From: Macrostomum lignano
Lineage: Eukaryota
Assembly (NCBI GenBank): GCA_002269645.1
Contig: NIVC01001122.1
Coordinates: 186,001 to 250,000 of the forward strand
Length of the DNA stretch: 64,000 nt
Reading direction: 5' to 3'
Numbering within the stretch: the first letter of the stretch is position 1; each line of letters begins with the position of its first letter. Below are positions 16,335-57,613 of the stretch, one piece after another. The translations under genes and the position numbers were made by a program. Below the pieces are notes generated by a model. It had not been told where the DNA came from. It saw nothing but the letters and a program-made list of their open reading frames with translations, and did no database searches.

Positions 16335-16645
16335 TCGCCTGCCCAGCAACCAACCAGCCAGCCAACCCGCAGGCACTTCTAGCTTGTCACCGCGTGCGCG
16401 TCCGCACTTCCGCTGTCTCCTATAGGGGCTCAGCAAAGCTCCATCCTGCCCTTCGTTCCTTCTTTACTGCTGCCATTGCTGGTGTATTCTCTTCCAGCTC
16501 TATAGTTGGCCGTTCGTTAATTCTTCAAATAGAGAGAGAGAGGTCTACTATAGCAGGCATCTTAGCAACAAACTAAGCCTGCAAACTTTAGCCAAAGCTC
16601 TCTCTCTCTCCTCGCCTGCTTGTGGCAGCCGCTCAGGCCGCCCCA

Positions 16646-18844: not shown

Positions 18845-18925
<81 letters not shown>

Positions 18926-18946
18926 CAGTTAGTTAGTTAGTTAGTC

Positions 18947-19001
<55 letters not shown>

Positions 19002-19078
19002 CAGTTAGTTAGTTAGTTAGTCAGTTAGTTAGTTAGTCAGTTAGTTAGTTAGTTAGTTAGTCAGTTAGTTAGTTAGTC

Positions 19079-19132
<54 letters not shown>

Positions 19133-22100: not shown

Positions 22101-25100
22101 CACTGATAGTCTCTGATTATCCTGGGAGGCTCCCAACTGCACTGATAGTCTCTGATTATCCTGGGAGGCTCCCGACTGCACTGATAGTCTCTGATTATCC
22201 TGGGAGGCTTCCGACTGCACTGATAGTCTCTGATTATCCTGGGAGGCTCCCGACTGCACTGATAGTCTCTGATTATCCTGGGAGGCTCCCGACTGCACTG
22301 ATAGTCTCTGATTATCCTGGGAGGCTCCCAACTGCACTGATAGTCTCTGATTATCCTGGGAGGCTCCCGACTGCACTGATAGTCTCTGATTATCCTGGGA
22401 GGCTTCCGACTGCACTGATAGTCTCTGATTATCCTGGAAGGCTCTCAACTGCACTAATAGTCTATGGCTATCCTGGAAGGCTCCCAACTGCACTGATAGT
22501 CTATGGCTATTCTAAAAGGCCCCCGACTGCACTGATTTGTCTCTGATTATCCTGGGAGGCTCCCGACTGCACTGATAGTCTATGGCTATCCTGGAAGGCC
22601 CCCGACTGCACTGATAGTCTCTGATTATCCTGGGAGGCTTCCGACTGCACTGATAGTCTCTGATTATCCTGGAAGGCTCTCAACTGCACTAATAGTCTAT
22701 GGCTATCCTGGGAGGCTCCCAACTGCACTGATAGTCTATGGCTATCCTGGAAGGCTCTCAACTGCACTGATAGTCTATGGCTATCCTGGAAGGCTCCCAA
22801 CTGCACTGATAGTCTATGGCTATTCTAAAAGGCCCCCGACTGCACTGATTTGTCTCTGATTATCCTGGGAGGCTCCCGACTGCACTGATAGTCTCTGATT
22901 ATCCTGGGAGGCTCTCAACTGCACTGATAGTCTATGGCTATCCTGGAAGGCTCTCAACTGCACTAATAGTCTATGGCTATCCTGGAAGGCTCCCAACTGC
23001 ACTGATAGTCTATGGCTATCCTGGAAGGCTCCCGACTGCACTGATAGTCTCTGATTATCCTGGGAGGCTCTCAACTGCACTGATAGTCTATGGCTATCCT
23101 GGAAGGCTCTCAACTGCACTAATAGTCTATGGCTATCCTGGGAGGCTCCCAACTGCACTGATAGTCTATGGCTATCCTGGAAGGCTCTCAACTGCACTGA
23201 TAGTCTATGGCTATCCTGGAAGGCTCCCAACTGCACTGATAGTCTCTGATTATCCTGGAAGGCTCCCGACTGCACTGATAGTCTCTGATTATCCTGGGAG
23301 GCTCTCAACTGCACTGATAGTCTATGGCTATCCTGGAAGGCCCCCGACTGCACTGATAGTCTCTGATTATCGTGGGAGGCTCCCGACTGCACTGATAGTC
23401 TGATAATTTGCAGGTGTACCGCAGCAAAGACAACAAGATCAGTTTAAAGCTCGGCGACTTCGGCCTGGCAATGGAGGTTGAAGAGGCAATCTTTACTGTT
23501 TGCGGCACGCCAACCTACGTCGCCCCGGAGATTCTGTCGGAGACAGGTGAGCGGATGACAGGTGCTGCGCCCTTCCTGTTGATTTTGAATCAGGTGAGAG
23601 GAAAAAGGGAAAAATTAGATTACGATTAGAAATTTTGTTACCGAGGGGAGAACGTTTAAATCATCCGAGGGATGACGACAGGATGTCAGGTTTATCCTGG
23701 ATTTATAAATTCATATTTACTATACAAATCATTTTATATTAACAAAAACTGCATAGTTTATATTGTCCTTAGTAGTTTGAACTAATCAGCCTGCACGACT
23801 TGACCGACTTGAAGTCCTACTAGAGTTTATGAGGAACTTAATTTACTTGGAAAGTCTCTTCTCTCTGCGTCCCTCTACCTTGCTTCCTGTCAACACAATG
23901 GCGTCTCAAGTTTGCCACCTGGCAACTATTATTAAATTGGCTTCTTGAGCTTCCTGTGAACAGTTAGAAAGATAGTCGGGGCTGGGGCGCCACAAAGAGA
24001 GCGCGCGGGACAGTTCCTGTTCCATTAAGTTCAATCGGTCCATTTGTATCAGTCCCAAAGTATTATCAGCAGGCTTATGTCTAATAGGACTCCCCTTTAT
24101 CCATTCGGTTGCCACTCTTATCCACTGGGTTGCCACTCCTTATCCATTAGGTTGCCACTCTTATCCACTGGGTTGCCACTCCTTATCCATTAGGTTGCCG
24201 CTCCTTATCCATTGGGTTGCCATTCTCTCTTATCCATTGGGTTGCCATTCTCTCTTATCCATTAGGTTGCCGCTCCTTATCCATTGGATTGCCATTCTCT
24301 CTTATCCATCGGGTTGCTGCTCCTTATCCATTGGGTTGCCACTCTCTCTTATCTATTTGGTTGCCACTCCTTATCCATTGGGTTGCCACTCCTTATCCAT
24401 TGGGTTGCCACTCTTATCCATTAGGTTGCCGCTCCTTATCCATTGGGTTGCCATTCTCTCTTATCCATTGGGTTGCCATTCTCTCTTATCCATTAGGTTG
24501 CCGCTCCTTATCCATTGGATTGCCATTCTCTCTTATCCATCGGGTTGCTGCTCCTTATCCATTGGGTTGCCACTCTCTCTTATCTATTTGGTTGCCACTC
24601 CTTATCCATTGGGTTGCCACTCCTTATCCATTGGGTTGCCACTCTTATCCATTAGGTTGCCGCTCCTTATCCATTGGATTGCCATTCTCTCTTATCTATT
24701 TGGTTGCCACTCCTTATCCATTGGGTTGCCACTCCTTATCCATTGGGTTGCCGCTCCTTATCCATTGAGTTGCCACTCCTTATCCATTAGGTTGCCGCTC
24801 CTTATCCATTGGGTTCCCATTCTCTCTTATCCATTGGGTTGCCACTCCTTATCCAGTGTGTTGCCATTCTCTCTTATCCATTGGGTTGCCACTCTCTCTT
24901 ATCTATTTGGTTTCCACTCCTTATCCAGTGTGTTGCCACTCTCTCTTATCCATTGGGTTGCCACTCCTTATCCATTGGGTTGCCACTCCTTATCCAGTGG
25001 GTTGCCACTCCCTCTTATCTATTGGGTTGCCAATTAAATCTAATTAAAAACAAGTCCACTCTCCCATTCCAGGCTATGGACTCGAAGTGGACATGTGGGC

Positions 25101-26241
25101 CCTGGGCGTCATTGCCTACATCTTGCTGTGCGGCTTCCCCCCGTTCCGCAGTCGGGACCGGCGCCAGTCAGAGCTGTTCCAGATGATCAAGACTGGCACC
25201 TTTGAGTACCTCAGCCCCTACTGGGACCACGTGTCCGCCCGTGAGTGCGCTGGCTACCTGCCTACCTGCCTACCTGCCTACCTGCCTACCTGCCTACCTG
25301 CCTACCTGCCTACCTGCCTACCTGCCTACCTGCCTACCTGCCAACCTGCCTACCTGCCAACCTGCCTACCTGCCTACCTGCCTACCTGCCAACCTGCCTA
25401 CCTGCCAACCTGCCTACCTGCCAACCGAACTACCCTTCAATTCTACTCTACCCACTCCACTTGCCCCCTTTGTCACTTTACATCCCCATTGTCACCCACA
25501 TCCCCATTGTCACCCACATCCCCATTGTCACCCACATCCCCATTGTCACCCACATCCCCATTGTCACCCACATCCCCATTGTCACCCACATCTCATTGTC
25601 ACTCCACATCCCATTGTCACTCCACATCCCCATTGTCACTCCACATCCCATGTCACTCCATATCCCCATGTCACTCCACATCCCATTGTCACTCCATATC
25701 CCATGTCAATCCACATCCCCTTGTCAATCCACATCCCCTTGTCAATCCACATTACATTGTCACTCCACATTCCATTGTCAATCCACATCCCATTGTCACT
25801 CCACATCCCATTGTCACTCCACATCTCATTGTCACTCCATATCCCATTGTCACTCCACATCTCATTGTCACTCCACATCCCATTGTCACTTTACATCCCA
25901 TTGTCACTCCACATCCCATTGTCACTCCACATCCCATTGTCACTCCACACCTCTACATAAATTTGAATTCGAAATCTCACACCGCAGCCGCCAAGGATCT
26001 CATCAACCGTCTCCTAGTGGTGGACAAGGCGGCCCGCCTCACCGCCATAGACGTCCTTTGCCACGCCTGGGTGCTGTCACGCGGCGGCTCACAACGCCAG
26101 GAGCAGGAGCAGCAGACTGACTCAGCCGCCTTGAAAGACGAGCAGTCCCGTCTGCGCGACCAGCTTGTTGCAGAGGCGGCCGCAGCGATTGAAGAGTTCA
26201 GCAAATTGAAGGCTTCTAGTCTCTATGGCGGGGTTACCTGA
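16646..26241 (+). CDS. DCLK3: Doublecortin-like Ser/Thr kinase (DCLK3-like), two DCX domains plus CaMK-type kinase, about 910 aa
   Basis: Exons 16646(or 16658)-17048, 18300-18820, 19163-20416, 23414-23546, 25073-25240, 25988-26241; all GT-AG and phase-consistent (2733 nt). DCX1: NGDIFFKG...[14 protein letters not shown]2: [10 protein letters not shown]...KMLLNRR. Kinase motifs [45 protein letters not shown]. Family is secure; the DCLK3 subtype is from recalled signatures. Confidence 0.88.
17250..17935. repeat. Intronic 59-mer tandem repeat (about 11-12 copies)
   Basis: Unit aaccagtgcaaactgtggttggtttattgcccattaaactggggctggagtcagagcct. Confidence 0.95.
18846..19131. repeat. (TTAG)n microsatellite with TCAG variants
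   Basis: Fills most of the DCLK intron 18821-19162. Confidence 0.97.
21105..23402. repeat. Intronic 39-mer satellite ctgcactgatagtctctgattatcctgggaggctcccga
   Basis: About 59 copies; ends a few nt before the splice acceptor at 23413. Confidence 0.97.
24095..25032. repeat. Intronic about 22-mer ccttatccattgggttgccact
   Basis: Tandem copies read directly. Confidence 0.95.
25252..25950. repeat. Intronic (cctacctg)n followed by 18-mer catcccattgtcactcca
   Basis: Two adjacent arrays, about 25252-25425 and about 25480-25950. Confidence 0.95.
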
Positions 26242-26637
26242 GACTCCTCTCATTGCGCGAAAAACTGCTGCTTTCTACTCTTAGTAGCATAAAGTGGCTG
26301 TTTATTGCTGTTTAAATGCTTAAAAAACCAGATTAAACTATTTTTTGCGAATTTGATAGAAACTTGAAAGCTCTCCCACTGGCAGTGTTTGCTTTGCTTG
26401 TTCGTCCTGCTGCGTAGCCATTCTAGTGCATTTACGTATCGATTAAATTACTATTTTATTATAATTATTTACTTAATTATACCGTTACTTACCTGTGTGC
26501 GAATTTGGGGGATGAAAAAATGATTGTGACATGTCTAAGTAAATATATTGTTCAATTAAAAATGAATCAAATCTAAGCTTGTAAGGATTTCTGCTTTAAT
26601 TTACTGTCAGCCCAGTTGGGTGGAACTGCAAGTTAAC

Positions 26638-27170
26638 TCTCACTCCCCTTCACTCTCACTCCCCTTCACTCTCACTCCCCTTCACTCTCACTCCCCTTCA
26701 CTCTCACTCCCCTTCACTCTCAGTCCCCTTCACTCTCACTCCCCTTCACTCTCACTCCCCTTCACTCTCACTCCCCTTCACTCTCACTCCCCTTCACTCT
26801 CACTCCCCTTCACTCTCACTCCCCTTCACTCTCACTCCCCTTCACTCTCACTCCCCTTCACTCTCACTCCCCTTCACTCTCACTCCCCTTCACTCTCACT
26901 CCCCTTCACTCTCACTCCCCTTCACTCTCACTCCCCTTCACTCTCACTCCCCTTCACTCCCAGTCCCCTTCACTCTCACTCCCCTTCACTCTCTCAGTTG
27001 CCTTCACTCTCACTCCCCTTCACTCTCACTCCCCTTCACTCTCATTCCCCTTCACTCTCTCAGTTGCCTTCACTCTCACTCCCCTTCACTCTCACTCCCC
27101 TTCACTCTCTCAGTTGCCTTCACTCTCACTCCCCTTCACTCTCTCAGTTGCCTTCACTCTCACTCCCCTT
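26638..27170. repeat. Intergenic 16-mer cactctcactcccctt
   Basis: Tandem copies read directly. Confidence 0.95.
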
Positions 27171-27835
27171 TTCTTTTCACTTTCACGTTTCTCCTGAGTG
27201 CAGTAATTTCTGTCTCGCTGTCTGGCAAAAAGAGTTAATTATAATTTAATGACTGAGTGAAAATTGTCAACAGACAAGCTAATTGCAACTCCACCATAAA
27301 AGATGTTGTTTAAATTAAAATAAAAAACTTGTGAAAGCTGCTGCTGGAATCGGAAATGAGGCGCAGCTTTTGAATTTGCCGGGGGCGGCAGCAGCAGAAC
27401 AGAAATCTGGGGCCGGGGAACGGGAGGATAAGGGGGGGGTAATTGCAGCTGTTTCTAGGGCTGCTGGCATCAGATAATTACCCAACCTTGGTCTTTGTAG
27501 TTTGTCGAAGGCGGCTTGTCCGAATGCACAAGAGGAGAAGCAGAAATAAAAGACAGTGGAGAAAAGTCAAAAGGGAAGTCGAGGGGTTGGGGTTGGACAG
27601 GAGGTGGCCCTCTCCCGCCAAGCGCGGAAGAGGAAGTCGGTAATTAATAGAGCGAGGCGGGCGAGGGAACGGAGCCTACACTGCAACCCCCCCCCCCCAC
27701 TCGTCCAGCCAGAAAGCCCGCATGACATCTAATGCCAAGCCTCGCAGCTCGCTGCTTTGACCCCTTTCAGGGAAAATTGTTTGCTTTTAGCATTTGAGTC
27801 CAAGTAACATGAAAATTGGCTTGGTTGGATTCGCT

Positions 27836-28940
27836 GCAGCTTGAAGGTGGCTGAGTGCAGCTTGAAGGTGGCTGAGTGCAGCTTGGAGGTGGCTGAGTGC
27901 AGCTTGGAGGTGGCTGAGTGCAGCTTGGAGGTGGCTGAGTGTAGCTTGGAGGTGGCTGAGTGCAGCTTGAAGGTGGCTGAGTGCAGCTTGGAGGTGGCTG
28001 AGTGCAGCTTGGAGGTGGCTGAGTGCAGCTTGGAGGTGGTTGAGTGCAGCTTGGAGGTGGCTGAGTGCAGCTTGAAGGTGGCTGAGTGCAGCTTGGAGGT
28101 GGCTGAGTGCAGCTTGGAGGTGGCTGAGTGCAGCTTGGAGGTGGCTGAGTGCAGCTTGGAGGTGGCTGAGTGCAGCTTGGAGGTGGCTGAGTGCAGCTTG
28201 AAGGTGGCTGAGTGCAGCTTGAAGGTGGTTGAGTGCAGCTTGAAGGTGGTTGAGTGCAGCTTGAAGGTGGCTGAGTGCAGCTTGAAGGTGGTTGAGTGCA
28301 GCTTGAAGGTGGTTGAGTGCAGATTGGAGGTGGCTGAGTGCAGCTTGAAGGTGGAATTGGCTTTCTTATACCGATTTGAACTATACTGCTTTGTGCGCTT
28401 GGCTGCTCAATTTTAGCTTACCATTGTAGACCCTCCCCCTCCACTGAACTGATCGATTTCTATTTATGCGTACAGTACTTCTTCGCAATGTACATCGTTC
28501 GTCCTAACTACATGTACTCAGTTCTATAATACAATATAAAGGACCAACGCGTCAGTTTAGAAACGCTGTCTACAACTTGCGGCTCAAGCCAATTCAATCG
28601 CTTCGTCTCAATCTCAATTCATCACAGTTGAGTGCAGCTTGAAGGTGGCTGAGTGTAGCTCGTAGCTTGGAGGTGGCTGAGTGTAGCTTGGGGGTGGCTG
28701 AGTGCAGCTTGAAGGTGGCTGAGTGCAGCTTGAAGGTGGCTGAGTGCAGCTTGAAGGTGGCTGAGTGCAGCTTGAAGGTGGTTGAGTGCAGCTTGGAGGT
28801 AGCTGAGTGTAGCTGGGAGGAGGCTGAGTGCAGCTTGAAGGTGGTTGAGTGCAGCTTGGAGGTGGCTGAGTGCAGCTTGAAGGTGGTTGAGTGCAGCTTG
28901 GAGGTGGCTGAGTGTAGCTTGGAGGTGGCTAAGTGCAGGT
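27836..28940. repeat. 21-mer gtgcagcttggaggtggctga in two blocks split by about 270 bp of unique sequence
   Basis: Blocks 27836-28354 and 28626-28940. Confidence 0.93.
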
Positions 28941-29222
28941 TAGATGTACAGCAGAGTATGAGACATGTCATAAATTGAGATGAAAATAGTTATTGCGAGA
29001 TGCGGAGGTATTCAAGGATTCTCCCAAGCGTTGTCTTCGTTCTCTCGTAAAAAAACTTGGGAACCTTTCTGAGCCAATGGCATCCAGCTGCCAGTGAGAG
29101 CTGCATTTCTCCCCCATGGCTTTTGGCCTGCATTCGAATGGTGTAAATTGGCACTGACAGCTCCTATCGGGTTCCAATTGATCACTCGGAAACAACTGCG
29201 CTGTTATCTTCAACAATCAGGG

Positions 29223-32200
29223 ATGCAGACAGCCGCCAGGTTCACCCCGGAGCAGCCTGACGGTCCGGACTTCTCGCCACAGAGCGGCGGAGCCGGCGGC
29301 TACCCCGGCGGCCTGTCTGTCGCGGCGGCCTACTCCTCCGCACTCGGCCAGGGATTTCCGGCCGCCGCCAGGTCCGCCGCTCTCTACATCTCGGCTGCTC
29401 ACGGCTTCGGTGGCGACCAGGCCGCTGCCGCCGCTTACTTCGCTGCCCACCACGGCTTCGGCGCTGCCAGGCCTGATGGTGAGTCAAGGCCTGATACAGC
29501 TGCTGCATCCCGCCTTCATCTGTCTGAGCTGCTGCATCCCGCCTTCATCTGTCTGAGCTGCTGCATCCCGCCTTCATCTGTCTGAGCTGCTGCATCCCGC
29601 CTTCATCTGTCTGAGCTGCTGCATCCCGCCTTCATCTGTCTGAGCTGCTGCATCCCGCCTTCATCTGTCTGAGCTGCTGCATCCCGCCTTCATCTGTCTG
29701 AGCTGCTGCATCCCGCCTTCATCTGTCTGAGCTGCTGCATCCCGCCTTCATCTGTCTGAGCTGCTGCATCCCGCCTTCATCTGTCTGAGCTGCTGCATCC
29801 CGCCTTCATCTGCCCTGTCTGTCCCTCATCTCCCACTGCCTGTCCCTCATCTCCCACTGCCTGTCCCTCATCTCCCACTGCCTGTCCCTCATCTCCCTGT
29901 CTGTCCCTCATCTGCCCTGTCCGTCCCTCATCTGCCCTGTCCGTCCCTCATCTGCCCTGTCCGTCCCTCATCTGCCCTGTCCGTCCCTCATCTGCCCTGT
30001 CCGTCCCTCATCTGCCCTGTCCGTCCCTCATCTGCCCTGTCCGTCCCTCATCTGCCCTGTCCGTCCCTCATCTCCCCCTGTCCCTCATCTGCCCTGTCCG
30101 TCCCTCATCTCCCCCTGTCTGTCCCTCATCTCCCCCTGTCTGTCCCTCATCTCCCCCTGTCTGTCCCTCATCTGCCCTGTCCGCCCTTCACCCTTTCTAC
30201 CCGCTTCCCAGTTCTCCCTTTCACTTCCTCATCTTCCCATTCCATCTCAAACAGCCTCACGCACTGTCTCTGCATCAAGTCTCTATATCTCGTATGGCCA
30301 TTTAAACTGGATTGACCCGAAAATCTCAGCAAAATACGGCTTCTGAACATTCCTGCCATTGCCGCACAGCCGCAGGCTGCCTCGTGCCCCTGCCGTCTGG
30401 CAACAAGAAGCTGCGCCGATTGCGCAAGCCGCGCACCATCTACTCCAGCCTCCAGCTGCAGCAGCTCAGCAGGCGGTTCCAGCGCACCCAGTACCTGTCA
30501 TTGCCTGAGCGGGCTGAGCTGGCAGCCAGCCTGGGGCTCACGCAGACTCAGGTGAGTAGCATTTGAGCAGACCGCTCTTAGCTGTTTATGACTGCTCTTA
30601 GCTGTTTATGACTGCTCTTAGCTGTTTATGACCTCTCTTAGCTGTTTATGACCACTATTAGCTGTTTATGACCTCTCCAGCTGTGTATGACCTCTCTTTG
30701 CTGTGTACGACCTCTCTTAGCTGTATATGACCTCTCTCAGCTGTGTATGACCTCTCTTAGTTGTTATCACCTCTCTTATCTGTGTATGACCTCTCTTTGC
30801 TGTGTACGACCTCTCTTAGCTGTATATGACCTCTCTCAGCTGTGTATGACCTCTCTTAGCTGTGTATGACCTCTCTTAGCTGTGTATGACCTATGACCTC
30901 TCTTTGCTGTGTATGACCTCTCTTTGCTGTGTATGACCTCTCTCAGCTGTGTATGACCTCTCTTAGTTGTTATAACCTCTCTCAGCTGTGTATGACTTCT
31001 ATCAGCTGTGTATGACTTCTCTCAGCTGTGTATGACTTCTCTCAGCTGTTATCACCTCTCTTAGCTTTCATTTTTCCCGAATGCCGCTGCTTGAAAAACT
31101 GACAAACTGTCAGGCTCGACAGGAGGAAAATCAAACTCGTGCAGCGATCCACTTTTCTTCTCAAAGAGAGAGGGAGAGAGAGAGAGAGACCTTCGCCGCC
31201 CAAAGTCTCCAGCCAGGTGGGAGCAGCTCAGGTGGCGGCAGGAGCAGTGAGGCCTGCAATTATCTGCAATTGAATGGCGACAGATGGGGCTGCCTGCAGG
31301 CGGTGACTTTTTGTGAGTCAGTTTTTGTTTGAAGTTCCTGGCCACCTTTTTTCTATTCAACGGCTTCGAAACCCTCTGCCCTGCGACAGCTTCTGGAGGT
31401 TTGATCAGTTGCTTGTCCGAATTGTTCGAACCTTGAAATTTGCAATCGAATTGGAGAAGCAACAGGCTCGGGAAGTTGCAAACTTCTATCGAATAATAGC
31501 AGATTGTTCAGTATGTAGCTGAGTTGAATAATGGCAGATTGTTCAGTGTGTAGCTGAGTTGAATAATGGCAGATTGTTCAGTGTGTAGCTGAGTTAAATA
31601 ATGGCAGATTGTTCAGTGTGTAGCTGAGTTGAATAATGGCAGATTGTTCAGTGTGTAGCTGAGTGAATAATGGCAGATTGTTCAGTATGTAGCTGAGTTG
31701 AATAATAATGGCAGATTGTTCGGTATTTAGCTGAGTGAATAATGGCAGATTGTTCAGTATGTAGCTGAGTTGAATAATAATGGCAGATTGTTCAGTATGT
31801 AGCTGAGTTGAATAATAATGGCAGATTGTTCGGTATGTAGCTGAGTGAATAATGGCAGATTGTTCAGTATGTAGCTGAGTTGAATAATAATGGCAGATTG
31901 TTCAGTATGTAGCTGATGTGAATAATGGCAGATTGTTCAGTGTGTAGCTGAGTTGAATAATAATGGCAGATTGTTCAGTGTGTAGCTGAGCTGAATAATG
32001 GCAGATTGTTCAGTGTGTAGCTGAGCTGAATAATGGCAGATTGTTCAGTATGTAGCTGAGTTGAATAATGGCAGATTGTTCAGTGTGTAGCTGAGTTGAA
32101 TAATGGCAGATTGTTCAGTGTGTAGCTGAGTTGAATAATGGCAGATTGTTCAGTATGTAGCTGAGTTGAATAATGGCAGATTGTTCAGTGTGTAGCTGAG

Positions 32201-35142
32201 TTGAATAATTGCAGATTGTTCAGTGTGTATCTAAGCTGAATAATGGCAGATTGTTCAGTATGTAGCTGAGTGAATAATGGCAGATTGTTCAGTATGTAGC
32301 TGAGTTGAATAATGGCAGATTGTTCAGTATGTAGCTGAGTTGAATAATGGCAGATTGTTCAGTATGTAGCTGAGTTGAATAATGGCAGATTGTTCAGTAT
32401 GTAGCTGAGTTGAATAATGGCAGATTGTTCAGTGTGTATCTAAGCTGAATAATGGCAGATTGTTCAGTATGTAGCTGAGTGAATAATGGCAGATTGTTCA
32501 GTATGTAGCTGAGTTGAATAATGGCAGATTGTTCAGTGTGTATCTAAGCTGAATAATGGCAGATTGTTCAGTATGTAGCTGAGTGAATAATGGCAGATTG
32601 TTCAGTATGTAGCTGAGTTGAATAATGGCAGATTGTTCAGTGTGTAGCTGAGTTGAATAATAATGGCAGGTTGTTCAGTATGTAGCTGAGTTGAATAATG
32701 ATGGCAGATTGTTCAGTGTGTAGCTGAGTTGAATAATAATGGCAGATTGTTCAGTATGTAGCTGATGTGAATAATGGCAGATTGTTCAGTGTGTAGCTGA
32801 GTTGAATAATAATGGCAGATTGTTCAGTATGTAGCTGATGTGAATAATGGCAGATTGTTCAGTGTGTAGCTGAGTTGAATAATAATGGCAGATTGTTCAG
32901 TGTGTAGCTGAGCTGAATAATGGCAGATTGTTCAGTGTGTAGCTGAGTTGAATAATGGCAGATTGTTCAGTATGTAGCTGAGTTGAATAATGGCAGATTG
33001 TTCAGTGTGTAGCTGAGTTGAATAATGGCAGATTGTTCAGTGTGTATCTAAGCTGAATAATGGCAGATTGTTCAGTATGTAGCTGAGTGAATAATGGCAG
33101 ATTGTTCAGTATGTAGCTGAGTTGAATAATGGCAGATTGTTCAGTATGTAGCTGAGTTGAATAATGGCAGATTGTTCAGTGTGTATCTAAGCTGAATAAT
33201 GGCAGATTGTTCAGTGTGTATCTAAGCTGAATAATGGCAGATTGTTGAGTATGTAGCTGAGTTGAATAATGGCAGATTGTTCAGTATGTAGCTGAGTTGA
33301 ATAATGGCAGATTGTTCAGTATGTAGCTGAGTTGAATAATGGCAGATTGTTCAGTGTGTATCTAAGCTGAATAATGGCAGATTGTTCAGTATGTAGCTGA
33401 GTGAATAATGGCAGATTGTTCAGTATGTAGCTGAGTTGAATAATGGCAGATTGTTCAGTGTGTAGCTGAGTTGAATAATAATGGCAGGTTGTTCAGTATG
33501 TAGCTGAGTTGAATAATGATGGCAGATTGTTCAGTGTGTAGCTGAGTTGAATAATAATGGCAGATTGTTCAGTATGTAGCTGATGTGAATAATGGCAGAT
33601 TGTTCAGTGTGTAGCTGAGTTGAATAATAATGGCAGATTGTTCAGTGTGTAGCTGAGCTGAATAATGGCAGATTGTTCAGTGTGTAGCTGAGTTGAATAA
33701 TGGCAGATTGTTCAGTATGTAGCTGAGTTGAATAATGGCAGATTGTTCAGTGTGTAGCTGAGTTGAATAATGGCAGATTGTTCAGTGTGTATCTAAGCTG
33801 AATAATGGCAGATTGTTCAGTATGTAGCTGAGTGAATAATGGCAGATTGTTCAGTATGTAGCTGAGTTGAATAATGGCAGATTGTTCAGTGTGTATCTAA
33901 GCTGAATAATGGCAGATTGTTCAGTATGTAGCTGAGTGAATAATGGCAGATTGTTCAGTATGTAGCTGAGTTGAATAATGGCAGATTGTTCAGTATGTAG
34001 CTGAGTTGAATAATGGCAGATTGTTCAGTATGTAGCTGAGTTGAATAATGGCAGATAATGGCAAGAATGGCAGTCGCTGCAACCATCAGGTGAAAATTTG
34101 GTTCCAAAACCGAAGATCGAAATTCAAGAAGCTGGTGAAGCTGGGCAACGATCCTCATCTGCTGATCAACTCGATGAGTCTGTGTGGTGAAGGCGACGCA
34201 GAGTTCGAGCAGGTGAGGCTTGAGAAGGATTCTGAGCTGGACTTTACACGACAGATCGCACATCACACATTACTGATACATGGCAAAGTGAAAATCGCAC
34301 ATCACACATTACTGATACATGGCAAAGTGAAAATCGCACATCACACACTATTGATGCATGGCAAAGTGAAAATCGCACATCACACATTACTGATGCATGG
34401 CAAAGTGAAAATCGCACATCACACACTATTGATGCATGGCAAAGTGAAAATCGCACATCACACATTACTGATGCATGGCAAAGTGAAAATCGCACATCAC
34501 ACACTATTGATACATGGCAAAGTGAAAATCGCACATCACACACTATTGATGAATGGCAAAGTGAAAATCGCACATCACACACTATTGATACATGGCAAAG
34601 TGAAAATCGCACATCACACACTATTGATACATGGCAAAGTGAAAATCGCACATCACACACTATTGATGAATGGCAAAGTGAAAATCGCACATCACACACT
34701 ATTGATGCATGGCAAAGTGAAAATCGCACATCACACACTATTGATGCATGGCAAAGTGAAAATCGCACATCACACACTATTGATGCATGGCAAAGTGAAA
34801 ATCGCACATCACACACTATTGATGCATGACAAAGTGAAAGTAGCACATGGAATTTTCATTCAACCCGCTGTCCGCCCGCAGCCTCCAAACGCGGAAGTCA
34901 ACATTCAGCCAGTACAGCAGCAACTGGCGGAAAATTTGGGAGCAGCATCAGCGTCAGCCTCCGCTCCATCAGCCGCGAGCAGCCATCAGCTCAACCGATG
35001 GTGCCACCAAGAAGCTTCAGCCTACGGCACAATGCAGTCAACGGCTTTCGATGCACGACCGTGGCACCAGAAGAGCCAGCAGCCGAGCAACGGTTCCCAA
35101 GCCTTCTATGACTGGTTTGAGTACCCGTCTCAAACCAACTAG
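29223..35142 (+). CDS. Dll: Distal-less/Dlx homeobox protein, copy A (about 271-273 aa)
   Basis: Exons 29223-29478, 30370(or 30376)-30551, 34090-34212, 34882-35142. Homeodomain [44 protein letters not shown]|[14 protein letters not shown], with the Dlx-typical intron between HD codons 44 and 45. The start codon is less certain. Confidence 0.9.
29499..30185. repeat. Dlx A intron 1: 29-mer (11 copies) followed by about 20-mer ctgccctgtccgtccctcat
   Basis: Homologous to the arrays at 41812-42613 (inverted). Confidence 0.95.
30575..31065. repeat. Intronic 20-mer tctcttagctgtgtatgacc
   Basis: Tandem copies read directly. Confidence 0.93.
31495..34060. repeat. Intronic 34-38-mer gaataatggcagattgttcagtatgtagctgagtt
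   Basis: About 2.5 kb array in Dlx A intron 2. Confidence 0.97.
34255..34845. repeat. Intronic 39-mer catggcaaagtgaaaatcgcacatcacacactattgatg
   Basis: About 15 copies in Dlx A intron 3; open in the Dlx reading frame. Confidence 0.95.
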
Positions 35143-35449
35143 TTTAGCAAATCTAGTTTTCTAGCTACGTTGGCTTGACTTGCTGTAACGCCTCAGCGCT
35201 TTTCATCATAAACGATGATCGACTGTGGCTGGATTGCCAGGAATTTCTTTGCGCTAATTCATGCATTGTTTGCATTTGAAATGAGTTCGATTGACTAATT
35301 TATTTCTAATCCTTTTAGTCAAATTATTCTACTAAGAGTAAGCAATTAAGAGGTTTTAAAATTTCAATGAGGCGTTTGATCTCTGATTGATTGGCCAAAC
35401 GGGTAGAGCAGAAAAGCATTGACGGTTAGGGTTTTGTGTTTTTTTTAGA

Positions 35450-36208
35450 ATTAGGGTTAGGACCAAGGTTACGGTTAGGATCAGGGTTAGGATTAGGATT
35501 ATGATTAGGATTAGCATAAAGATTAGGATTAGGATCAGGGTTAGGATTAGGATTAGGATTAGGATTAGCATAAGGATTAGGATCAAGGTTAGGATTAGGA
35601 TTATGATTAGGATTAGCATTAGGATTAGGATTAGGATCAGGGTTAGGATTAGGATTATGATTAGAATCACGGTTAGGAGTAGGATTAGGGATAGGATTAG
35701 GATTAGGATTCGAATTAGGATTAGGGATAAGATTAGGATTAGGGATAAGATTAGGATTAGGGATAAGATTAGGATTAGGGATAAGATTAGGATTAGGGAT
35801 AAGATTAGGATTAGGGATAAGATTAGGATTAGGGATAAGATTAGGATTAGGGATAAGATTAGGATTAGGGATAAGATTAGGATTAGGGATAAGATTAGGA
35901 TTAGGGATAAGATTAGGATTAGGGATAAGATTAGGATTAGGGATAAGATTAGGATTAGGGATAAGATTAGGATTAGGGATAAGATTAGGATTAGGGATAA
36001 GATTAGGATTAGGGATAAGATTAGGATTAGGGATAAGATTAGGATTAGGGATAAGATTAGGATTAGGGATTAGATTAGGATCAAGATTAGGAATAGGATT
36101 AGGATTAGGATTAGGACTAGGATTAGGATTAGGATTAGGATCAGGATCAGGGTTAGGATTAGGATTAGGATAAGGATCAGGATTAGGATTAGGGCTAGGA
36201 TTAGGGTT
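35450..36208 (+). repeat. Telomere-like array (TTAGGA/TTAGGG; central 18-mer gattaggattagggataa)
   Basis: Degenerate hexamer flanks around a homogeneous 18-mer core at about 35720-36070; single orientation. Confidence 0.85.
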
Positions 36209-38822
36209 TGTGGCGATTAATTTATACTGTCTGATAGCTTATAAAAACGAGTTAAGCACAGGGCAGTTAAAATATATAAAAAATCACCATCACTGAGAGA
36301 TGTTGCTCCTTCCTTTTTCACGGAAACCCCCGAAACTCCAGCAGCAGCCGCCTCCGCACGGAAGGCAGAAATTAACAATTTTTTTTCGCTGCTCAGTTGA
36401 GGATGAAGCAGCGGAGGCTGGGCTTTTTTTAAACTGGATAAACAAAATTCGACATTTCGAGCTGAAGCCGCTTCCGCACGCACCGGAAGTGAATTCGTTC
36501 GAATGGGAGGCTGATAGATCCTGCTCTCTGCTTCCGCCTTCCACTCTTCCTCCACTTTCAGCTTCAGGGCAGCTCTGGTCTCTCTGAGTCACTCAGGCGC
36601 CAGTGTGTGTTTTTCATTTTTCAAGTTTTCAGTGATGAAAATTTCATAATATTAGCGCAATTTTATTATTGAGTACACCATGGTTATGTAGAATCGGTAA
36701 AGGGATTCCACTGTTGCATTTCCCAAGAGAAACGGTGAAAATATTTGCCTGCTTGTTTTACCTGCTTAGCCCCCCCCCCGAGCGGCCTTTGACTTTCATC
36801 GCTAATTGGCCCTCTTAAGCTGCTCCCCGATCAGCAAGTCCTCAGAGCGATTGTTTGAGCAGCTCGAAGAGGGAGAGAAAGACAAAAAATAGGCTTTTTT
36901 GAGCAAAAACTGTCGCTCTTCTGTCTGCTTTTTGTTGCTGCAAGCCTTTGTGCGAGAGGCGAGGGAACAAAGGCGCTCAAATGTTGAAAGCAACCCTGCT
37001 GTTATGCTGCTTTTGCTGCCGCTCCGCTCTGGCTAAGGCTGCGTGTTACTGATTGAGGGCTGATGGGGGGACGGCCCCATGCGCACCTGAGGCTTGAATC
37101 CAGCCTACTCAACTCGAGGACTCACCTGAGGGGTCGTGTGCCCCCCCCATATCCCCAGAATTGCATGAGCGATCCCCCCCCCCAACGAGAGCATCGAATC
37201 AGCGATCCATTCTCCTCCATGGCCTGACCAGCGCGTGTCTCTTTCACCAACAAGCCATATTATTCGATTTAATCTGACTCAATCACACGCTTTTGCATTA
37301 AACTAACCTGTTTAAAACAAACTTTCAAAGCTTTTCCTAGCACTGGCCTAGCAGTCAGGCACAACACAATGCAATAATAGCGATTTTCGTTCATTTAGCA
37401 TGGCAACAAAATGATGATGGAGAATTAGCTATGGAGAAAGAGTCTGAGGACAGGGCTAGGCGGGGCCTAATCTCCAAGGCCCGTAGGAAGGATTCGTTGC
37501 CTCCAGAGTCTTATTCCCTCTTCCCCAGGGTGGATCCGCCCACCTCCACAATTCAAAGGCTCGACCATCGCACACCACACACCAAGGCCCGCACACCAGC
37601 CAGAGCGCCCGTCTGTGCATTCTGGTCCTCGGTGACTGAGCAGGACAGGGCAGGCCGGTTCTGCTTGGCCAAAAGTTGCTTTCAAACCATAAGCGAGGAG
37701 TCCCCGGCGATTTTTTTTTACCTTGAGCCCCGAGCCCATCCGAGGGAAGGGGGGAGGGTTGGCAGGAGGCAACCCCCCTTTGCTTGGGCGAAGGTACCCG
37801 CTAATTACAGGGGGGAGCAGGGGGAGGTCCGCCCGCCCTCCCCTACCCTCCACTGTCTCTCTGTGTCTCGAATTCGTTCGGAACTCATGGCAAGTTCTGT
37901 GGCGGGTGGCACCAAGCCGCGGCCTCCTGCTCATGACGGAGCGGCGTTTGTGCCCGGCGTCTCAAATTTCAGCGCTTCTCGACACAACTGCCTCTGGCCT
38001 GTGCTCGGCTGGCGGGGGGGGGGGCACAGCGTGAACTCGAATTTTCTATTCAGACTGCCAACCGCCAGACCAACATGCCTCTGAAATTTATGGCCTTTGT
38101 CTTAGCTGGCATTCATCTTGTAACATATCATCTTGTTCTTGTGTCGCTGCAATGGCCATTTGAGTCGGTATCTGTTGTCTTTGTTATCAATCATCTGCGG
38201 CATTTGAAGTACATTTCCAATTCTCAAACAACGTTGCGAAAATCTTTCAAAATTAAATTCAATGTTCGGAACAGACATATGGGTTTTTTTAGCACTGAGC
38301 TACACAGAGCTTGTATAAACATATATTAGATTGCACAATTCCTGCATATAAATTCTTCATATTTTTATATTTCAAATTCTGTTATTGCAGATAGTATGCA
38401 AAAGATATTGCTACAGGTGCTGTAGGGGTGGTGGGGGCTATAAGGTGAGCTTCGGAGCGCGTATTAAAAGCATAATGAATATTAGCGGAAACCAACGCAC
38501 AAACCAGAAGCGCGGACAAACAAGCAACAGTTATATTAGGAAAATTTTGTGTAAGAAAAAAGCAGAGAAAAAATGTATATTATTGAAACGGCCGACAAAA
38601 GCGAAACAATGGGAGAAAAAGCAGCAATTCAAGTGAGCAGTGGGGGCACGGATATATTGGACGCTGTGCAACTACCAAACTGCATTTATACCGACCGGCC
38701 CTAGTAACAAAAGTATATTTTTGTACCGAGCTTAAGTTTAATCTATTGACTAATTTATAGTTGTTAAGCCGGTAGGCTTGAGAGATACTCGAATGGGAAT
38801 GTCGGTCTCAGGCGCGTCCAGA

Positions 38823-41800
38823 TCAGCACTCCTGATGGTTGTACACCTGCTGCTGATAGCCGCCGCTGTACCAGTACGGGTTTCCGTGGTAACTGTAGCC
38901 TGGATGAGGCGACATCGGCAACTGGTAGGCGTTGCCATGGAGATGATGCGATTGCTCCCAGTCTCCGCTATACGAATGCAGCTGAGAATGCTGCTGCTGA
39001 TGATGTTGCTGCAGTGCGTGCTGATGCTGGAGCGCGTGCTGATGCGGGAGCAACTGCGATATCAGGGGGCCACTGGCGCCTCCTCCAGGTGCACCAACTT
39101 CACCAAGCAGGGCCGGTGGCGGCGGAGGCAGCGGCTGCGGCTTCTGAATTTCCGGAACTCCCGAGTCGCCGCTTCCAGCGGCGTCGGCTTCAGCCTCGGA
39201 GGATCCGTGAGTTGTCGGCGGAGGCGGAGGTCGGGAGTTCGAATCCAAGGAGTCAGCTTCGCAGGCTTCGTTAGCCGAGTCAAGCTGTTGCTGGCGCTGT
39301 TGAAAATGCTGATGAAGCTGGGGATGCTGGGGAAGCTGGTGCATCGGGATGATCGCTTCAGACTTTATCGGACTGTTCGCTTCGTTCTTCATCATCATTT
39401 CCTGGAAAGAATCGGTTTTTTTATCTAGATTAAAATTTTTAACTTTGTTTGAATCCTCTTATCCGTTTTTTTTCAACTAAAAGACTGCTGTCTCATTAAG
39501 GATTCTGAAATTCTTTTCTATCCCAAAATCTGACGATTCACTTGCCCCCATTCAATCCGCTACCCCTCACCCGATCCTCCAGGACTGCTCCGTTACCCCT
39601 CACCCGATCCTTCAGGACTGCTCCGTTACCCCTCACCCGATCCTTCAGGACTGCTCCGTTACCCCTCACCCGATCCTTCAGGACTGCTCCGCTACCCCTC
39701 ACCCGATCCTTCAGGACTGCTCCGCTACCCCTCACCCGATCCTTCAGGACTGCTCCGCTACCCCTCACCCGATCCTTCAGGACTGCTCCGCTACCCCTCA
39801 CCCGATCCTTCAGGACTGCTCCGCTACCCCTCACCCGATCCTCAGGACTGCTCCGCTACCCCTCACCCGATCCTTCAGGACTGCTCCGCTACCCCTCACC
39901 CGATCCTTCAGGACTGCTCCGCTACCCCTCACCCGATCCTTCAGGACTGCTCCGCTACCCCTCACCCGATCCTTCAGGACTGCTCTGCTACCCACTAAAA
40001 CTCTGCTTCATCAAAATCCCAAAGAACTCACGTCATCAGAAAATTCCTCATCGTCGGCGTTCATGCTGTCAACCAGGTTCTGCGGGTCCTGGCCCTGCTT
40101 CAGCAGTTTCTTATACTTGGACCGCTTGTTCTGAAACCAAATCTTCACCTGAAATATTGAGTTAAGAGGGAAAAATTATTGATAAGTCAAAGGCCTCTAT
40201 AAAGACAATAGCTCAAAGCATTTTAGAGATATAAAGCAGAATAGAGTGGCACAATGGCGCCCTCAGGAGAGAGTGAGAATAGGCTAGAACTCTCCATGCA
40301 TTCCTCCCAACTTCAAGGATGCAACAGTTGCGTCACGGCGCGCACGCCACCAACCATGCGCGCTGACGAGTGGCGAGGAAGAGCCCGCCCCGCAGAACGC
40401 TGAGAGGACATTCGCGGGCCGTCACGCAATCCAAAACAATTCTATTTGAGTCCTCGGGGCGTTTTTGGCATCGGTAGGGGAGAAGTTTTCTTTTCCTTTT
40501 TGTTGCTTCTTCACTCTTCGCGGGGATGTCGCTTTTTAAAGGCTACTCTAGCATTGCTAACGTTGTGTCTATCCCTTTCTATCCCTGTCTATCCCTGTCT
40601 ATCCCTTTCTATCCCTGTCTATCCCTGTCTATCCCTGTCTATCCCTGTCTATCCCTGTCTATCCCTGTCTATCCCTGTCTATCCCTGTCTATCCCTGTCT
40701 ATCCCTGTCTATCCCTGTCTATCCCTGTCTATCCCTGTCTATCCCTGTCTATCCCTGTCTATCCCTGTCTATCCCTGTCTATCCCTGTCTATCCCTGTCT
40801 ATCCCTGTCTATCCCTGTCTATCCCTGTCTATCCCTGTCTATCCCTGTCTATCCCTGTCTATCCCATGTCTATCCCATGTCTATTCTTGCCTATCCCTGT
40901 CTATCCCTATCTCAGTCCATTTCCCCATCAAATCACAACTGAATATTCACTCACCTGAGTCTGCGTGAGCCCCAGGCTGGCTGCCAGCTCAGCCCGCTCA
41001 GGCAGTGACAGGTACTGGGTGCGCTGGAACCGCCTGTTAAGCTGCTGCAGCTGGAGGCTGGAGTAGATGGTGCGCGGCTTGCGCATCTTCTTGCCTTTGC
41101 CGAGGCCGGCGCCAACTCTGACACCCTCTGAGTCGCGCGGCAAGTCTGCGGGCAGTAGTTGGAGTTGTTGTTATTTTCGTTAAAAATTAAAACAAACAAA
41201 CATGACTATCCTGACCATGAGGGAAACAGGAACAAGTGGGAACTGTGGCGGAGTGGCCTGAAAGTTGGAGTAATCTGATTTATAAGTCAGTTGGGAAATT
41301 CGGCCACGCAACAGGTGGTCGTAGACAGCGATGGCAAAACAATGGGATTCCCCCGAAGGGAGATGGCTGTTCCAAAGAGACGACACGATGCGATGAAATC
41401 ACTCTGAATTTCTACTCGCTTTAATCTTGACTGTCCTGCCTGCCTGTCTGTCTATATTATCTGGTCCGACTTCTTACAATAGATAGATTTTTATTTGAGA
41501 TCTTTGAGACGGCGAGGGGCCTCGGCCGGACTTACAGATAGCAATCTCGTTTGGTGGGGTTGGTCGCCGATTGAGAAGGCGGGCAGGGGCGGGGCTCTGA
41601 GGCCAGTGGGGATCTAACTCTTTGCTCCCACAGTCGGACTTTGGTTGAGTTGGCTGAGGATTTGGAAAGGTAGGAAAGGTGAGAATGGAGCCAGAGAATG
41701 AAGCCAGAGGAATTTGTTTGATAAAGTCAGTAAAAATAGCCAGGCTGTGATTGAGAAAGGGGAGGAGAGGATGACTAAAAGGAAAAGTAAAGCAATTGGT

Positions 41801-42928
41801 GGAGAGTAGAGAGACAGGCAGTGGGAGATGAAGGACAGGCAGTGGGAGATGAGGGACAGGCAGTGGGAGATGAGGGACAGGCAGGGGGAGATGAGGGACA
41901 GGCAGGGGGGATGAGGGACAGGCAGGGGAGATGAGGGACAGGCAGGGGGAGATGAGGGACAGGCAGTGGGAGATGAGGGACAGGCAGGGGAGATGAGGGA
42001 CAGGCAGGGGGATGAGGGACAGGCAGGGGAGATGAGGGACAGGCAGTGGGAGATGAGGGACAGGCAGTGGGAGATGAGGGACAGGCAGTGGGAGATGAGG
42101 GACAGGCAGTGGGAGATGAGGGACAGACAGGGGGAGATGAGGGACAGGCAGGGGGAGATGAGGGACAGGCAGGGGGAGATGAGGGACAGGCAGGGGGAGA
42201 TGAGGGACAGGCAGGGGGAGATGAGGGACAGGCAGGGGGAGATAAGGGACAGGCAGGGGGAGATGAGGGACAGGCAGGGGGAGATGAGGGACAGGCAGGG
42301 GGAGATGAGGGACAAACAGGGGAGATGAGGGACAGGCAGGGGGAGATGAGGGACAGACAGGGGGAGATGAGGGACAGGCAGGGGAGATGAGGGACAAACA
42401 GGGGGAGATGAGGGACAGGCAGGGGGAGATGAGGGGTAGACAGGGCAAATGAGGCGGGATGCAGCAGCTCAGACAGATAAAGGCGGGATGCAGCAGCTCA
42501 GACAGATGAAGGCGGGATGCAGCAGCTCAGACAGATGAAGGCGGGATGCAGCAGCTCAGACAGATGAAGGCGGGATGCAGCAGCTCAGACAGATGAAGGC
42601 GGGATGCAGCAGCTGTATCAGGCCTTGACTCACCATCAGGCCTGGCAGCGCCGAAGCCGTGGTGGGCAGCGAAGTAAGCGGCGGCAGCGGCCTGGTCGCC
42701 ACCGAAGCCGTGAGCAGCCGAGATGTAGGGAGCGGCGGACCTGGCGGCGGCCGGAAATCCCTGGCCGAGTGCGGAGGAGTAGGCCGCCGCGACAGACAGG
42801 CCGCCGGGGTAGCCGCCGGCTCCGCCGCTCTGTGGCGAGAAGTCCGGACCGTCAGGCTGCTCCGGGGAATATGGGCCACCGGCGGCGGCTGCTGCGGCCG
42901 CGGCAGCCGCGGATTTCAAAGTTTCCAT
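38823..42928 (-). CDS. Dll: Distal-less/Dlx homeobox protein, copy B (393 aa)
   Basis: Exons 42928-42634, 41145-40955, 40148-40032, 39401-38823; GT-AG and phase-consistent (1182 nt). Homeodomain [44 protein letters not shown]|[17 protein letters not shown]-rich C-terminus. Confidence 0.92.
39560..39990. repeat. Intronic 33-mer gctacccctcacccgatccttcaggactgctcc
   Basis: About 13 copies in Dlx B intron 3. Confidence 0.95.
40566..40910. repeat. Intronic 10-mer ctatccctgt
   Basis: Dlx B intron 2. Confidence 0.97.
41812..42613. repeat. Dlx B intron 1: about 20-22-mer gagatgagggacaggcagggg plus 29-mer (6 copies)
   Basis: Inverted homologs of 29499-30185. Confidence 0.95.
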
Positions 42929-43012: not shown

Positions 43013-43185
43013 CTCTTATATCTGCCCAGTCGCGTGCTGAGTGGGCCCCGACTCAGCATGCGCTGTCAAGTTTTTATTCAGAGGCCCGTCGATCCGCCAT
43101 TGGAGGGTGGGCGGCTGGGCTACCGGCTGAGCCGGGCTAGGGGGAGGGGGGTTGGGGCGCCAAGGCCGAGGCCCGCTGCTATTGG
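43013..43185 (-). promoter_or_regulatory. Candidate core promoter of Dlx copy B
   Basis: On the minus strand, TATAAGAG lies about 85 nt upstream of the ATG and agccaatag (CCAAT box) lies near 43180. Motif match only. Confidence 0.3.
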
Positions 43186-56477: not shown

Positions 56478-57613
56478 CAGGGACAACTAAAACACTCGGT
56501 TTTTAGTCATTTTTAAATAACAGCCGACGCTGAACCTGGCCGGCGACACCCCGGAGGAACGCAGGAATGAATTGCGCGACTTCTTCGCCGGCGTCGTGAT
56601 CATGAACGCGCCCACGTCGCCGCTGCCTGCCAGTTTTTGCGCTCCCACTGGGCACGCCGCTCCCAGCTGAGTAGGACTTCTGCACCAGCCCAGTCACCAC
56701 GGAGGTGTGCTGTTCTCTCGAAAAACATCCAGGCGGCAAGGCGCTCGGTCCCGACGAAGTCCCGGTCGAAGCGCTGCGGCTCCGCTGTGTGTGGCCTCCC
56801 AGGTCACAGGTGTCATGAACCGCGTGGCTCGCAGGCGCCCCCGCGCCCACCGAGTGGACCGTCACGTACTGCAGTCTGCAGTCGGTGCTGAACCCGTACC
56901 TGCGGTACGATCAGAATTCGGATTCTGGCCGCAACGCGATACAGTGACCCAGATCCTCACACTCCGCCGTGTCATTGAGGAGGCGCGCATCCGCCAGTCT
57001 ACGCTGATCATTGTCTTCATTGACTTTTCCAAAGGCGTTTGACTCGGTGTGTGTTGAGAACCGCACTTCCCTTTGTCCTTCGAGCCTACCGGGTACCCTA
57101 GCAGCTAATCGACGCTGTCATGGCGCTGTACTGTAATTTGCAACACTCGAGCTGCTGTGGTGACGGCAAACGCCTGTCTGACCTGTTCGACACTTCATCA
57201 GGAGTTCTGCAGGGCGACACGCTGACGCCGTTCCTCTTCGTACTGCTGCTGGACTGGGTGCTTCGGTTCGCACTCCCCTCGGCTAACGACGGCTTCCTGC
57301 TGCGCAGACGTATCGGTCGCCGCCACGGCGAAAAGCGCCTGAGCGTGCTTGGCTACGCCTACGACCTCGCCCTCCTGTCCTCGTCCGTTGAAGGCGCCCA
57401 GCGTGAGATATTCACGAAGGAAAGGTTTAAACTTGGCATGGTATTTTTTACATTTGCACAAGAGTTGAGGGCTTGTTGTTTTCCCTCACACTTCCTGAAA
57501 CTTGAGAGAGTTGCAGTTGGAATGGCCACATAGAACACTGCTTTTAAACGAGCCCCCAACTTTTTCATCATGATTTGGCTCGTTTCGCGTCCCGAGTGTT
57601 TTAGTTGTCCCTG
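56478..57613. mobile_element. Segment bounded by perfect 22-bp terminal inverted repeats (hAT-like CAGGG ends) enclosing the RT fragment
   Basis: cagggacaactaaaacactcgg at 56478-56499; exact reverse complement at 57592-57613. No target-site duplication is visible (gaagtcaa vs accgggag). Confidence 0.6.
56520..57410 (+). pseudogene. Decayed non-LTR retrotransposon reverse-transcriptase fragment (RTE-like)
   Basis: RT motifs across frames: FGFWPQRDTVTQILTLRRVIEE, FIDFSKAFDS (frameshifted), GVLQGDTLTPFLF, and YAYD in place of YADD. Contains a frameshift and an in-frame TAG; truncated at both ends. Confidence 0.8.

Follow-up and report, generated by a model that had tools for sequence, protein, structure and literature searches.

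Convergently transcribed pairs of Dlx (Distal-less) genes are a textbook example of developmental genes that shared regulation keeps together after duplication. Such a pair is described here from the flatworm Macrostomum lignano, in which two Dlx genes lie tail to tail in a 64-kb stretch of genomic DNA (contig NIVC01001122.1; the window in what follows). The probable history of this linked pair is an old inverted duplication within flatworms, whose 5' halves were recently made alike by gene conversion and whose 3' halves have anciently diverged.

In chordates, adjacent and convergent Dlx paralogues separated by a short intergenic region are known as Dlx1/2, Dlx3/4 and Dlx5/6 of vertebrates and as Dll-A/B of Ciona. 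The chordate pairs share a single origin, consist of genes with three exons, are linked to Hox genes and have intergenic enhancers whose shared use has been shown experimentally (PMC3199776).

The closest described system is found in an annelid. The genes CtDlxa and CtDlxb of Capitella teleta (McDougall, Korchagina, Tobin and Ferrier 2011, BMC Evol Biol 11:241) are arranged tail to tail with 18.2 kb between them; the proteins that they encode are divergent, and a 150-bp tract was found in the pair with GENECONV (PMC3199776). Its authors discussed convergence with the chordate pairs and the possible sharing of enhancers (PMC3199776). A preliminary description of the M. lignano window had started from the view that convergent Dlx pairs are limited to vertebrates and Ciona; the Capitella pair, with its conversion, contradicts this. 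Inverted duplicates recur in other homeobox families, as in engrailed/invected and iroquois (cited in PMC3199776), and shared enhancers have been proposed for them; they serve as an analogy only.

The window is free of gaps (it contains no N), has a GC content of about 50% and is dense in minisatellites. Gene models were built by reading all six frames and inspecting splice sites (Table 1). The two genes are convergent, with stop codons that face each other across 3,680 bp; they are adjacent, and no gene was recognised between them in this single assembly. The left gene encodes a product of 273 residues and the right gene one of 393. Each of the six introns begins with GT and ends with AG, and the intron phases are 1, 0 and 0 in both genes. 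The second intron of each splits the homeodomain between residues 44 and 45 (ACTCAG/gtgagt ... ag/GTGAA(A/G), where the slash marks the splice site). The third, an additional phase-0 intron, follows 25 codons (left) or 23 codons (right) past the homeodomain. Left exon 2 has tandem acceptors at 30369/30370 and 30375/30376, and public models use the acceptor at 30376. The right gene has a TATA-like gatataagag near 43020-43030, about 90-100 nt upstream of its ATG, and an ATTAAA lies on its side of the intergenic DNA at 38742. The window holds no homeobox other than these two, nor does it hold a Hox gene.

Both genes belong to the Dlx/Distal-less family. Their products match the Pfam Homeodomain (E values of 5e-21 and 1e-21), and the top database matches of both are Dlx/Dll proteins, with 80-98% identity across the homeodomain exons. 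A tryptophan motif is present near both C-termini (FYDWFEYP on the left, NPYWYSGGY on the right), and a conserved C-terminal tryptophan region is listed among the Dlx motifs (PMC3199776). The same list includes SKSAFME and YPY (PMC3199776). SKSAFME is found at most as LKSAAAA in the right product and is lacking in the left, and YPY is matched weakly by PYIS (right) and LYIS (left). The peptides encoded by the two fourth exons, of 86 and 192 residues, are unalignable (BLASTP E 0.63). In these respects the preliminary description was accurate: it had reported two convergent Dlx genes with stops at 35142 and 38823, and its coordinates, exon count, intron phases and unalignable C-termini all agree with the present models.

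Public protein models agree with these structures. The right product is 100% identical to P0001 (UniParc UPI0007A3529F), which is probably from M. lignano, given that its accession belongs to a block that includes named M. lignano entries. The exons of the left gene are up to 100% identical to the M. lignano UniProt entries A0A1I8JP92, A0A1I8FIJ1 and A0A1I8JR90. It is on this identity of products to M. lignano entries that the species described beforehand as "an apparent flatworm" can be named. The exon junctions agree with P0001 for the right gene and with P0002, P0004 and P0007 for the left. Public models of the left gene carry frameshifts in exon 4 relative to the window; they thus come from another assembly or copy, and provide independent support for the order of the left exons.

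The evidence for the history of the pair comes first from the pattern of similarity between its members. The copies were compared by sensitive blastn after one locus had been reverse-complemented, and substitutions were counted by the Nei-Gojobori method. Only three matches are obtained: tract A, which has a single mismatch in the 416 nt of its unique-sequence part; tract B, in the homeobox; and exon 3, at 73.6% identity across 72 nt. Tracts A and B are separated by 144 nt in the left gene and by 741 nt in the right, and the two spacers are mutually unrelated. Nothing else aligned at this sensitivity, whether in exon 4, in the introns outside the tracts or in the flanks.

Substitutions follow the same division. 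The 77 codons of shared exon 1 have no synonymous difference in 61.7 sites and one nonsynonymous difference, and homeodomain residues 1-44 have a proportion of synonymous differences (pS) of 0.059 and of nonsynonymous differences (pN) of 0.020. In the 29 codons compared in exon 3, pS is 0.80 and saturated while pN is 0.21; within homeodomain residues 45-60, synonymous sites are likewise saturated and pN is 0.09.

This pattern indicates an old duplication, with purifying selection on the recognition helices of both copies and with recent gene conversion of the 5' halves on top of it. That the duplication is old follows from the saturated synonymous sites of exon 3 and from the lack of any alignment in exon 4, the flanks and the remaining introns. 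Conversion is invoked because selection alone cannot hold synonymous and intronic sites identical. The "converted tracts" named in the preliminary description are thus confirmed as two tracts with sharp edges, in which near-identity extends into introns.

Of the 231 coding nucleotides that align in tract A, a single one differs (29380 against 42732), and this difference exchanges a proline of the right gene (APYIS) for a leucine in the left (ALYIS). It lies in the region that aligns with "YPY" of other Dlx proteins, and it recurs in independent protein models.

The pair can now be set beside that of Capitella. Both are inverted, tail-to-tail Dlx pairs of protostomes (spiralians) with otherwise divergent proteins. 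In both, a conversion tract covers the 5' part of the homeobox and runs into the beginning of the intron that interrupts it; in Macrostomum this tract is identical at 134 of 137 positions and reaches 6 nt into the intron. The pairs differ in spacing (3.7 kb in Macrostomum against 18.2 kb) and in the number of exons (four against three). Macrostomum has in addition a tract of about 1 kb covering exon 1 and intron 1, its 3' homeobox is unconverted (73.6%), and its left copy is without the ancestral 5' end. The two belong to different phyla and their origins are evidently separate.

The chordate pairs are more distant. The Macrostomum copies are of flatworm type (Ser26, G-x-D[PV] and a fourth exon, all described below), without a Hox gene or other homeobox in the 64 kb, and nucleotide identity of the kind seen in their tracts is absent from vertebrate pairs (PMC3199776). 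A neighbour-joining tree places neither copy with either chordate paralogue group. On these characters the Macrostomum pair does not appear to be a member of the chordate Dlx bigene lineage.

Full-text literature searches (Macrostomum Dlx/distal-less; flatworm homeobox complements) found no description of the pair. The arrangement and the conversion are already known from Capitella, and it is the flatworm case alone that appears to be undescribed.

Two kinds of character point to an origin of both copies inside the flatworms. The first consists of residues, which were surveyed in 309 retrieved Dlx proteins. Serine at homeodomain position 26 (YLSLPER) occurs in 11 of the 309, all from flatworms or probably from M. 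lignano, and YLALPER in 290. Directly after the homeodomain, flatworm proteins have the motif (Q/L)G-x-D-(P/V), often followed by L-x-x-(S/A)-M. G-x-D[PV] is found in no non-flatworm protein of the retrieved Dlx set, and the left gene carries it in exon 3, which is unconverted.

The second kind is the position of an intron. Dlx genes elsewhere have three exons, typically with an intron at homeodomain 44/45 (PMC3199776). A phase-0 intron 23-27 codons past the homeodomain is common to the Macrostomum pair and the two trematode Dlx genes compared with it. Exon 3 has a length of 43 codons in Dicrocoelium dendriticum, 39 in Trichobilharzia szidati, 41 in the left gene and 39 in the right, and in all four it starts ag/GT(N)AA(A/G) and ends in phase 0. 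The post-homeodomain intron, which had been treated beforehand as a feature of the pair, is thus a feature of flatworms, shared with trematode Dlx genes, that is ancestral and predates the duplication. Since the fourth exon is ancestral in flatworms and the duplication came later, the pair is independent of those of annelids and chordates.

Judged by these sequence characters, the two genes are a lineage-specific inverted duplicate, both members of which arose within flatworms. The independent inverted duplication proposed in the preliminary description therefore stands, since both copies carry flatworm-only characters, including in unconverted sequence.

The Dlx genes of other flatworms (Dicrocoelium dendriticum, Trichobilharzia szidati, other trematodes, Smed-dlx and the dlx of Hymenolepis) resemble the Macrostomum genes in having Ser26, QG.D[PV], a small exon 3 (39-43 codons, starting with homeodomain residue 45) and the phase-0 intron located 23-27 codons past the homeodomain. 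They differ in being single as far as retrieved or described, with no partner within 10 kb. A single Dlx was retrieved from Cichlidogyrus and from each of six trematode species; a single dlx is likewise mentioned in papers on planarians and in papers on tapeworms. The comparison of synteny in related flatworms that had been proposed as a check found no second homeobox within 10 kb at three flatworm loci, an indication weakened by the 22-kb span of trematode genes.

The Dlx gene of Cichlidogyrus casuarinus (L001 10001-11485) is an uninterrupted open reading frame (ORF) of 1,485 nt in which even the 44/45 intron is absent. This suggests intron loss or a retrocopy. Being intronless, the locus is silent on the history of the introns.

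Another arrangement was seen in contig NODE_15791 of ENA ERZ28668938 (L002 1029-1169 and 1566-1706; also P0005, P0008 and P0009). It has two Dlx homeobox exons (homeodomain 1-44) on the same strand, about 540 bp apart, with GT after each. The source is an animal, and exon 3 is absent from this metagenome contig. The exons could represent a tandem exon duplication, possibly of mutually exclusive exons, or tightly packed tandem genes.

Whether the left copy is a gene in its own right is the point at which the old duplication meets its strongest competitor. The homology between left and right ends at 29245, inside exon 1. The first seven codons of the left gene (MQTAARF) and all DNA upstream of them are unrelated to the start of the right gene and its TATA-like region. 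The left gene has also lost the pre-homeodomain motif VRV..GKGKKM, which the right gene keeps in its usual form, and no AATAAA or ATTAAA occurs within 1.1 kb past its stop. Of the "two complete genes" reported earlier, the intact ORFs and GT-AG introns were found as stated, but the 5' end of the left gene has been replaced.

Database entries add a complication. A0A1I8JP92, A0A1I8FIJ1 and A0A1I8JR90, named "protein kinase domain-containing", join exons of an upstream doublecortin-plus-kinase (DCLK-like) gene to the left Dlx, over a span of 16592-29478. A kinase-Dlx chimera was rejected as a real gene, since the kinase has its own stop codon (at about 26244) and the fusions need weak GT donors or "exons" made of a 21-bp minisatellite. 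The fusions are probably annotation artefacts in which gene models were merged.

These features would be expected if the left copy were not an independent functional gene, being instead a 5'-truncated duplicate that is silent, decays under the patching of conversion or appears only in DCLK read-through or chimeric RNA. This is unlikely, given what the left copy has retained. Its ORF is unbroken across four exons, and the splice sites are canonical. At 11 residues from its C-terminus, in an otherwise unalignable exon 4, it has FYDWFEYP; in many bilaterian Dlx proteins the corresponding motif (...QYSWY...) stands 13-20 residues from the end. GC content at third codon positions (GC3) remains of coding type in its private exons (exon 3, 0.66; exon 4, 0.60); the right gene has 0.74 and 0.64, and the intergenic GC is 0.36-0.48. 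Finally, pN in unconverted exon 3 is far below the saturated pS, which argues for purifying selection.

A start codon is also available. Besides the in-frame ATG at 29223, an acceptor-like cag ends at 29228 in left exon 1, and the spliced leader of M. lignano is 35 nt long and ends in ATG (PMC8629364). Trans-splicing at this cag/ACA acceptor, if it occurs, would place the leader ATG in frame with the left gene. The left copy is thus probably a diverged paralogue kept under purifying selection.

A second alternative concerns the assembly. Two loci or homeologous copies might have been mis-joined in the intergenic repeats, or the identity of the tracts might be a product of consensus polishing. 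The M. lignano genome is that of a repeat-rich hidden polyploid (PMC10468722), and minisatellites with units of 35, 39, 33, 10, 21 and 29 bp dominate every intron of both genes. A 760-bp telomere-like array of TTAGGA/TTAGGG/ATAAGA hexamers (TRF period 18, 42 copies) is present at 35445-36205, exactly between the genes; it may represent either an interstitial telomere-like remnant or a place where mis-assembly is likely.

Such an artefact is nonetheless improbable. The window is gap-free, the two arms differ everywhere but in two sharp-edged tracts, and tracts of this kind are expected from conversion between close inverted repeats. Both the structure of the left gene and the single L/P difference recur in the models that differ by frameshifts. 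An inverted haplotig was ruled out because the arms are unrelated beyond the two tracts.

The 39-bp array in left intron 3 stays open, so that an ORF of 364 residues (34048-35142) crosses the intron; its retention would add 13-residue repeats and no stop. The intergenic DNA has no Pfam-recognisable ORF, no Rfam family (in a search of the whole window) and no copy elsewhere in the window, and the flanking ORFs have no Pfam match either.

The remaining alternative is an ancient spiralian or bilaterian Dlx pair of common origin with those of Capitella or chordates that was kept in Macrostomum and lost elsewhere. In its favour are the tail-to-tail order, which recurs in Capitella, Ciona and vertebrates (PMC3199776), the strong divergence of the left gene and the poor resolution of the tree. 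It is nonetheless very hard to credit: the fourth exon and third intron are flatworm-specific in both copies, the motif in left exon 3 is found only in flatworms, and the other flatworms sampled gave one Dlx per species and no second homeobox near the three loci.

Several observations weigh against an old flatworm duplication followed by conversion. Neighbour-joining bootstrap trees were built from the homeodomain plus 23 residues and from the exon-3 part alone. They do not resolve the flatworm clade (bootstrap 14-24%) and group the right gene with another protein, P0003 (89-93%), not with the left gene. Since so short a region resolves little, reliance is placed on the discrete characters Ser26, G-x-D[PV] and intron position. 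The linkage is known from one assembly of a repeat-rich hidden-polyploid genome, with the telomere-like array between the genes. No public model begins at the ATG at 29223, the left copy being attached to the upstream kinase instead. Tracts A and B are separated by unrelated sequence, and two conversion events, or one and an indel, are needed.

The grouping with P0003 touches the size of the family. P0003 (UniParc UPI0007A135DF) is not in the window; it is 60% identical to the right gene, has the same post-homeodomain motif and is probably a third M. lignano Dlx, because its accession belongs to the block that holds M. lignano entries and the record is linked to no other organism. If P0003 is from M. 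lignano, then either left and right separated before right and P0003 did, or the left gene evolves faster; a grouping that excludes the left gene makes the order of the duplications uncertain. The Dlx phylogeny that had been suggested as a check supports right with P0003 and gives little support to a flatworm clade. The term "bigene" used beforehand fits the two linked genes, but these may not be the whole family. In a search for homologues of the private region of the left gene, exon 4 matched nothing outside M. lignano; lacking an orthologue of this exon, the age of the duplication is not bracketed.

Table 1. Positions in the 64-kb window of the Dlx pair, its repeated tracts and neighbouring genes, with trematode counterparts of exon 3 (positions in loci L003 and L004). 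Slashes in sequences mark splice sites.
Feature	Position	Strand	Remarks
Left Dlx exon 1	29223-29478	+	ATG 29223; phase-1 donor CTGATG/gtgagt; junction ARPD/G also in P0002, P0004 and P0007
Left Dlx exon 2	30370-30551	+	Diverged pre-homeodomain stretch and homeodomain residues 1-44
Left Dlx exon 3	34090-34212	+	Homeodomain 45-60 and 25 codons; phase 0 at both ends; P0002 residues 379-420 100% identical
Left Dlx exon 4	34882-35142	+	86 codons and TAG at 35140-35142; FYDWFEYP at end
Intergenic DNA	35143-38822		3,680 bp between stops
Right Dlx exon 4	39401-38823	-	192 codons and TGA at 38825-38823; Q/H/P-rich; NPYWYSGGY near C-terminus
Right Dlx exon 3	40148-40032	-	Homeodomain 45-60 and 23 codons; phase 0 at both ends
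Right Dlx exon 2	41145-40955	-	Canonical pre-homeodomain stretch and homeodomain 1-44
Right Dlx exon 1	42928-42634	-	ATG at 42928; P0001 100% identical
Tract A, left arm	29245-30276		Exon 1 from codon 8 and about 0.8 kb of intron 1; 29-bp and 20-bp minisatellites
Tract A, right arm	42867-41827		Inverted partner; 29-bp and 21-bp arrays in the same order, different copy numbers
Tract B, left arm	30421-30557		Homeodomain codons 2-44 and first 6 nt of intron 2
Tract B, right arm	41085-40949		134/137 identical to left arm; both edges sharp
Intronic minisatellite regions	34255-34848, 31491-34056, 39556-39993, 40566-40912, 41809-42435		
Trematode exon 3 counterparts	L003 29572-29700; L004 29048-29164		Bounded by phase-0 introns
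Hobbit/BLTP2 exons	960-11704	+	
Doublecortin-plus-kinase (DCLK-like) gene	16592-26246	+	Own stop at about 26244-26246, 3 kb before left Dlx ATG
Ubiquitin-conjugating enzyme exon	51.7 kb	-	
Dynein light chain exon	59.2-59.7 kb	-	

Beyond the genes of Table 1, ORFs at 56500-57530 on the forward strand contain the reverse-transcriptase-like stretches FIDFSKGV and YAYDLALLS. They have no Pfam match at the thresholds used, and are consistent with a fragment of a long interspersed nuclear element.

The proposed history of the pair starts with an old inverted duplication within the flatworm lineage, which would have produced the convergent arrangement. The right gene would be the canonical copy, with its TATA-like upstream region, full N-terminus and usual pre-homeodomain motif. 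The left gene would be a diverged paralogue that keeps the recognition helix, the flatworm-type residues after the homeodomain, the tryptophan motif, its GC3 and its splice sites. Gene conversion would then have overwritten the 5' halves, probably with the right gene as donor. The pair would then encode two transcription factors whose DNA-binding domains are nearly the same, as are their N-terminal halves except for the first residues and the stretch before the homeodomain, and whose C-terminal effector regions differ. The two genes may also share regulation.

Taken together with the known pairs, it seems, by a small margin of confidence, that the early-branching flatworm Macrostomum represents a further independent origin of a convergent Dlx pair, after those of chordates and annelids, with conversion at the same pre-intron homeobox segment as in Capitella, and with a left partner that lost its 5' end and may use a spliced-leader ATG.

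Some consequences are practical. Database entries that show a kinase-homeobox chimera would be corrected, and the flatworm-specific Dlx intron would be usable as a phylogenetic marker. M. lignano is a transgenic species amenable to RNA interference, in which reporter tests of the 3.7-kb intergenic region and knock-downs of each copy are feasible.

The wider meaning concerns the Dlx family. With the Capitella pair it became a question whether the inverted arrangement is favoured or merely frequent, and Macrostomum would provide a second, separate protostome replicate with the same localised conversion. If this is true, the inverted arrangement, together with concerted evolution of the DNA-binding half, would arise repeatedly from Dlx duplication and might be favoured.

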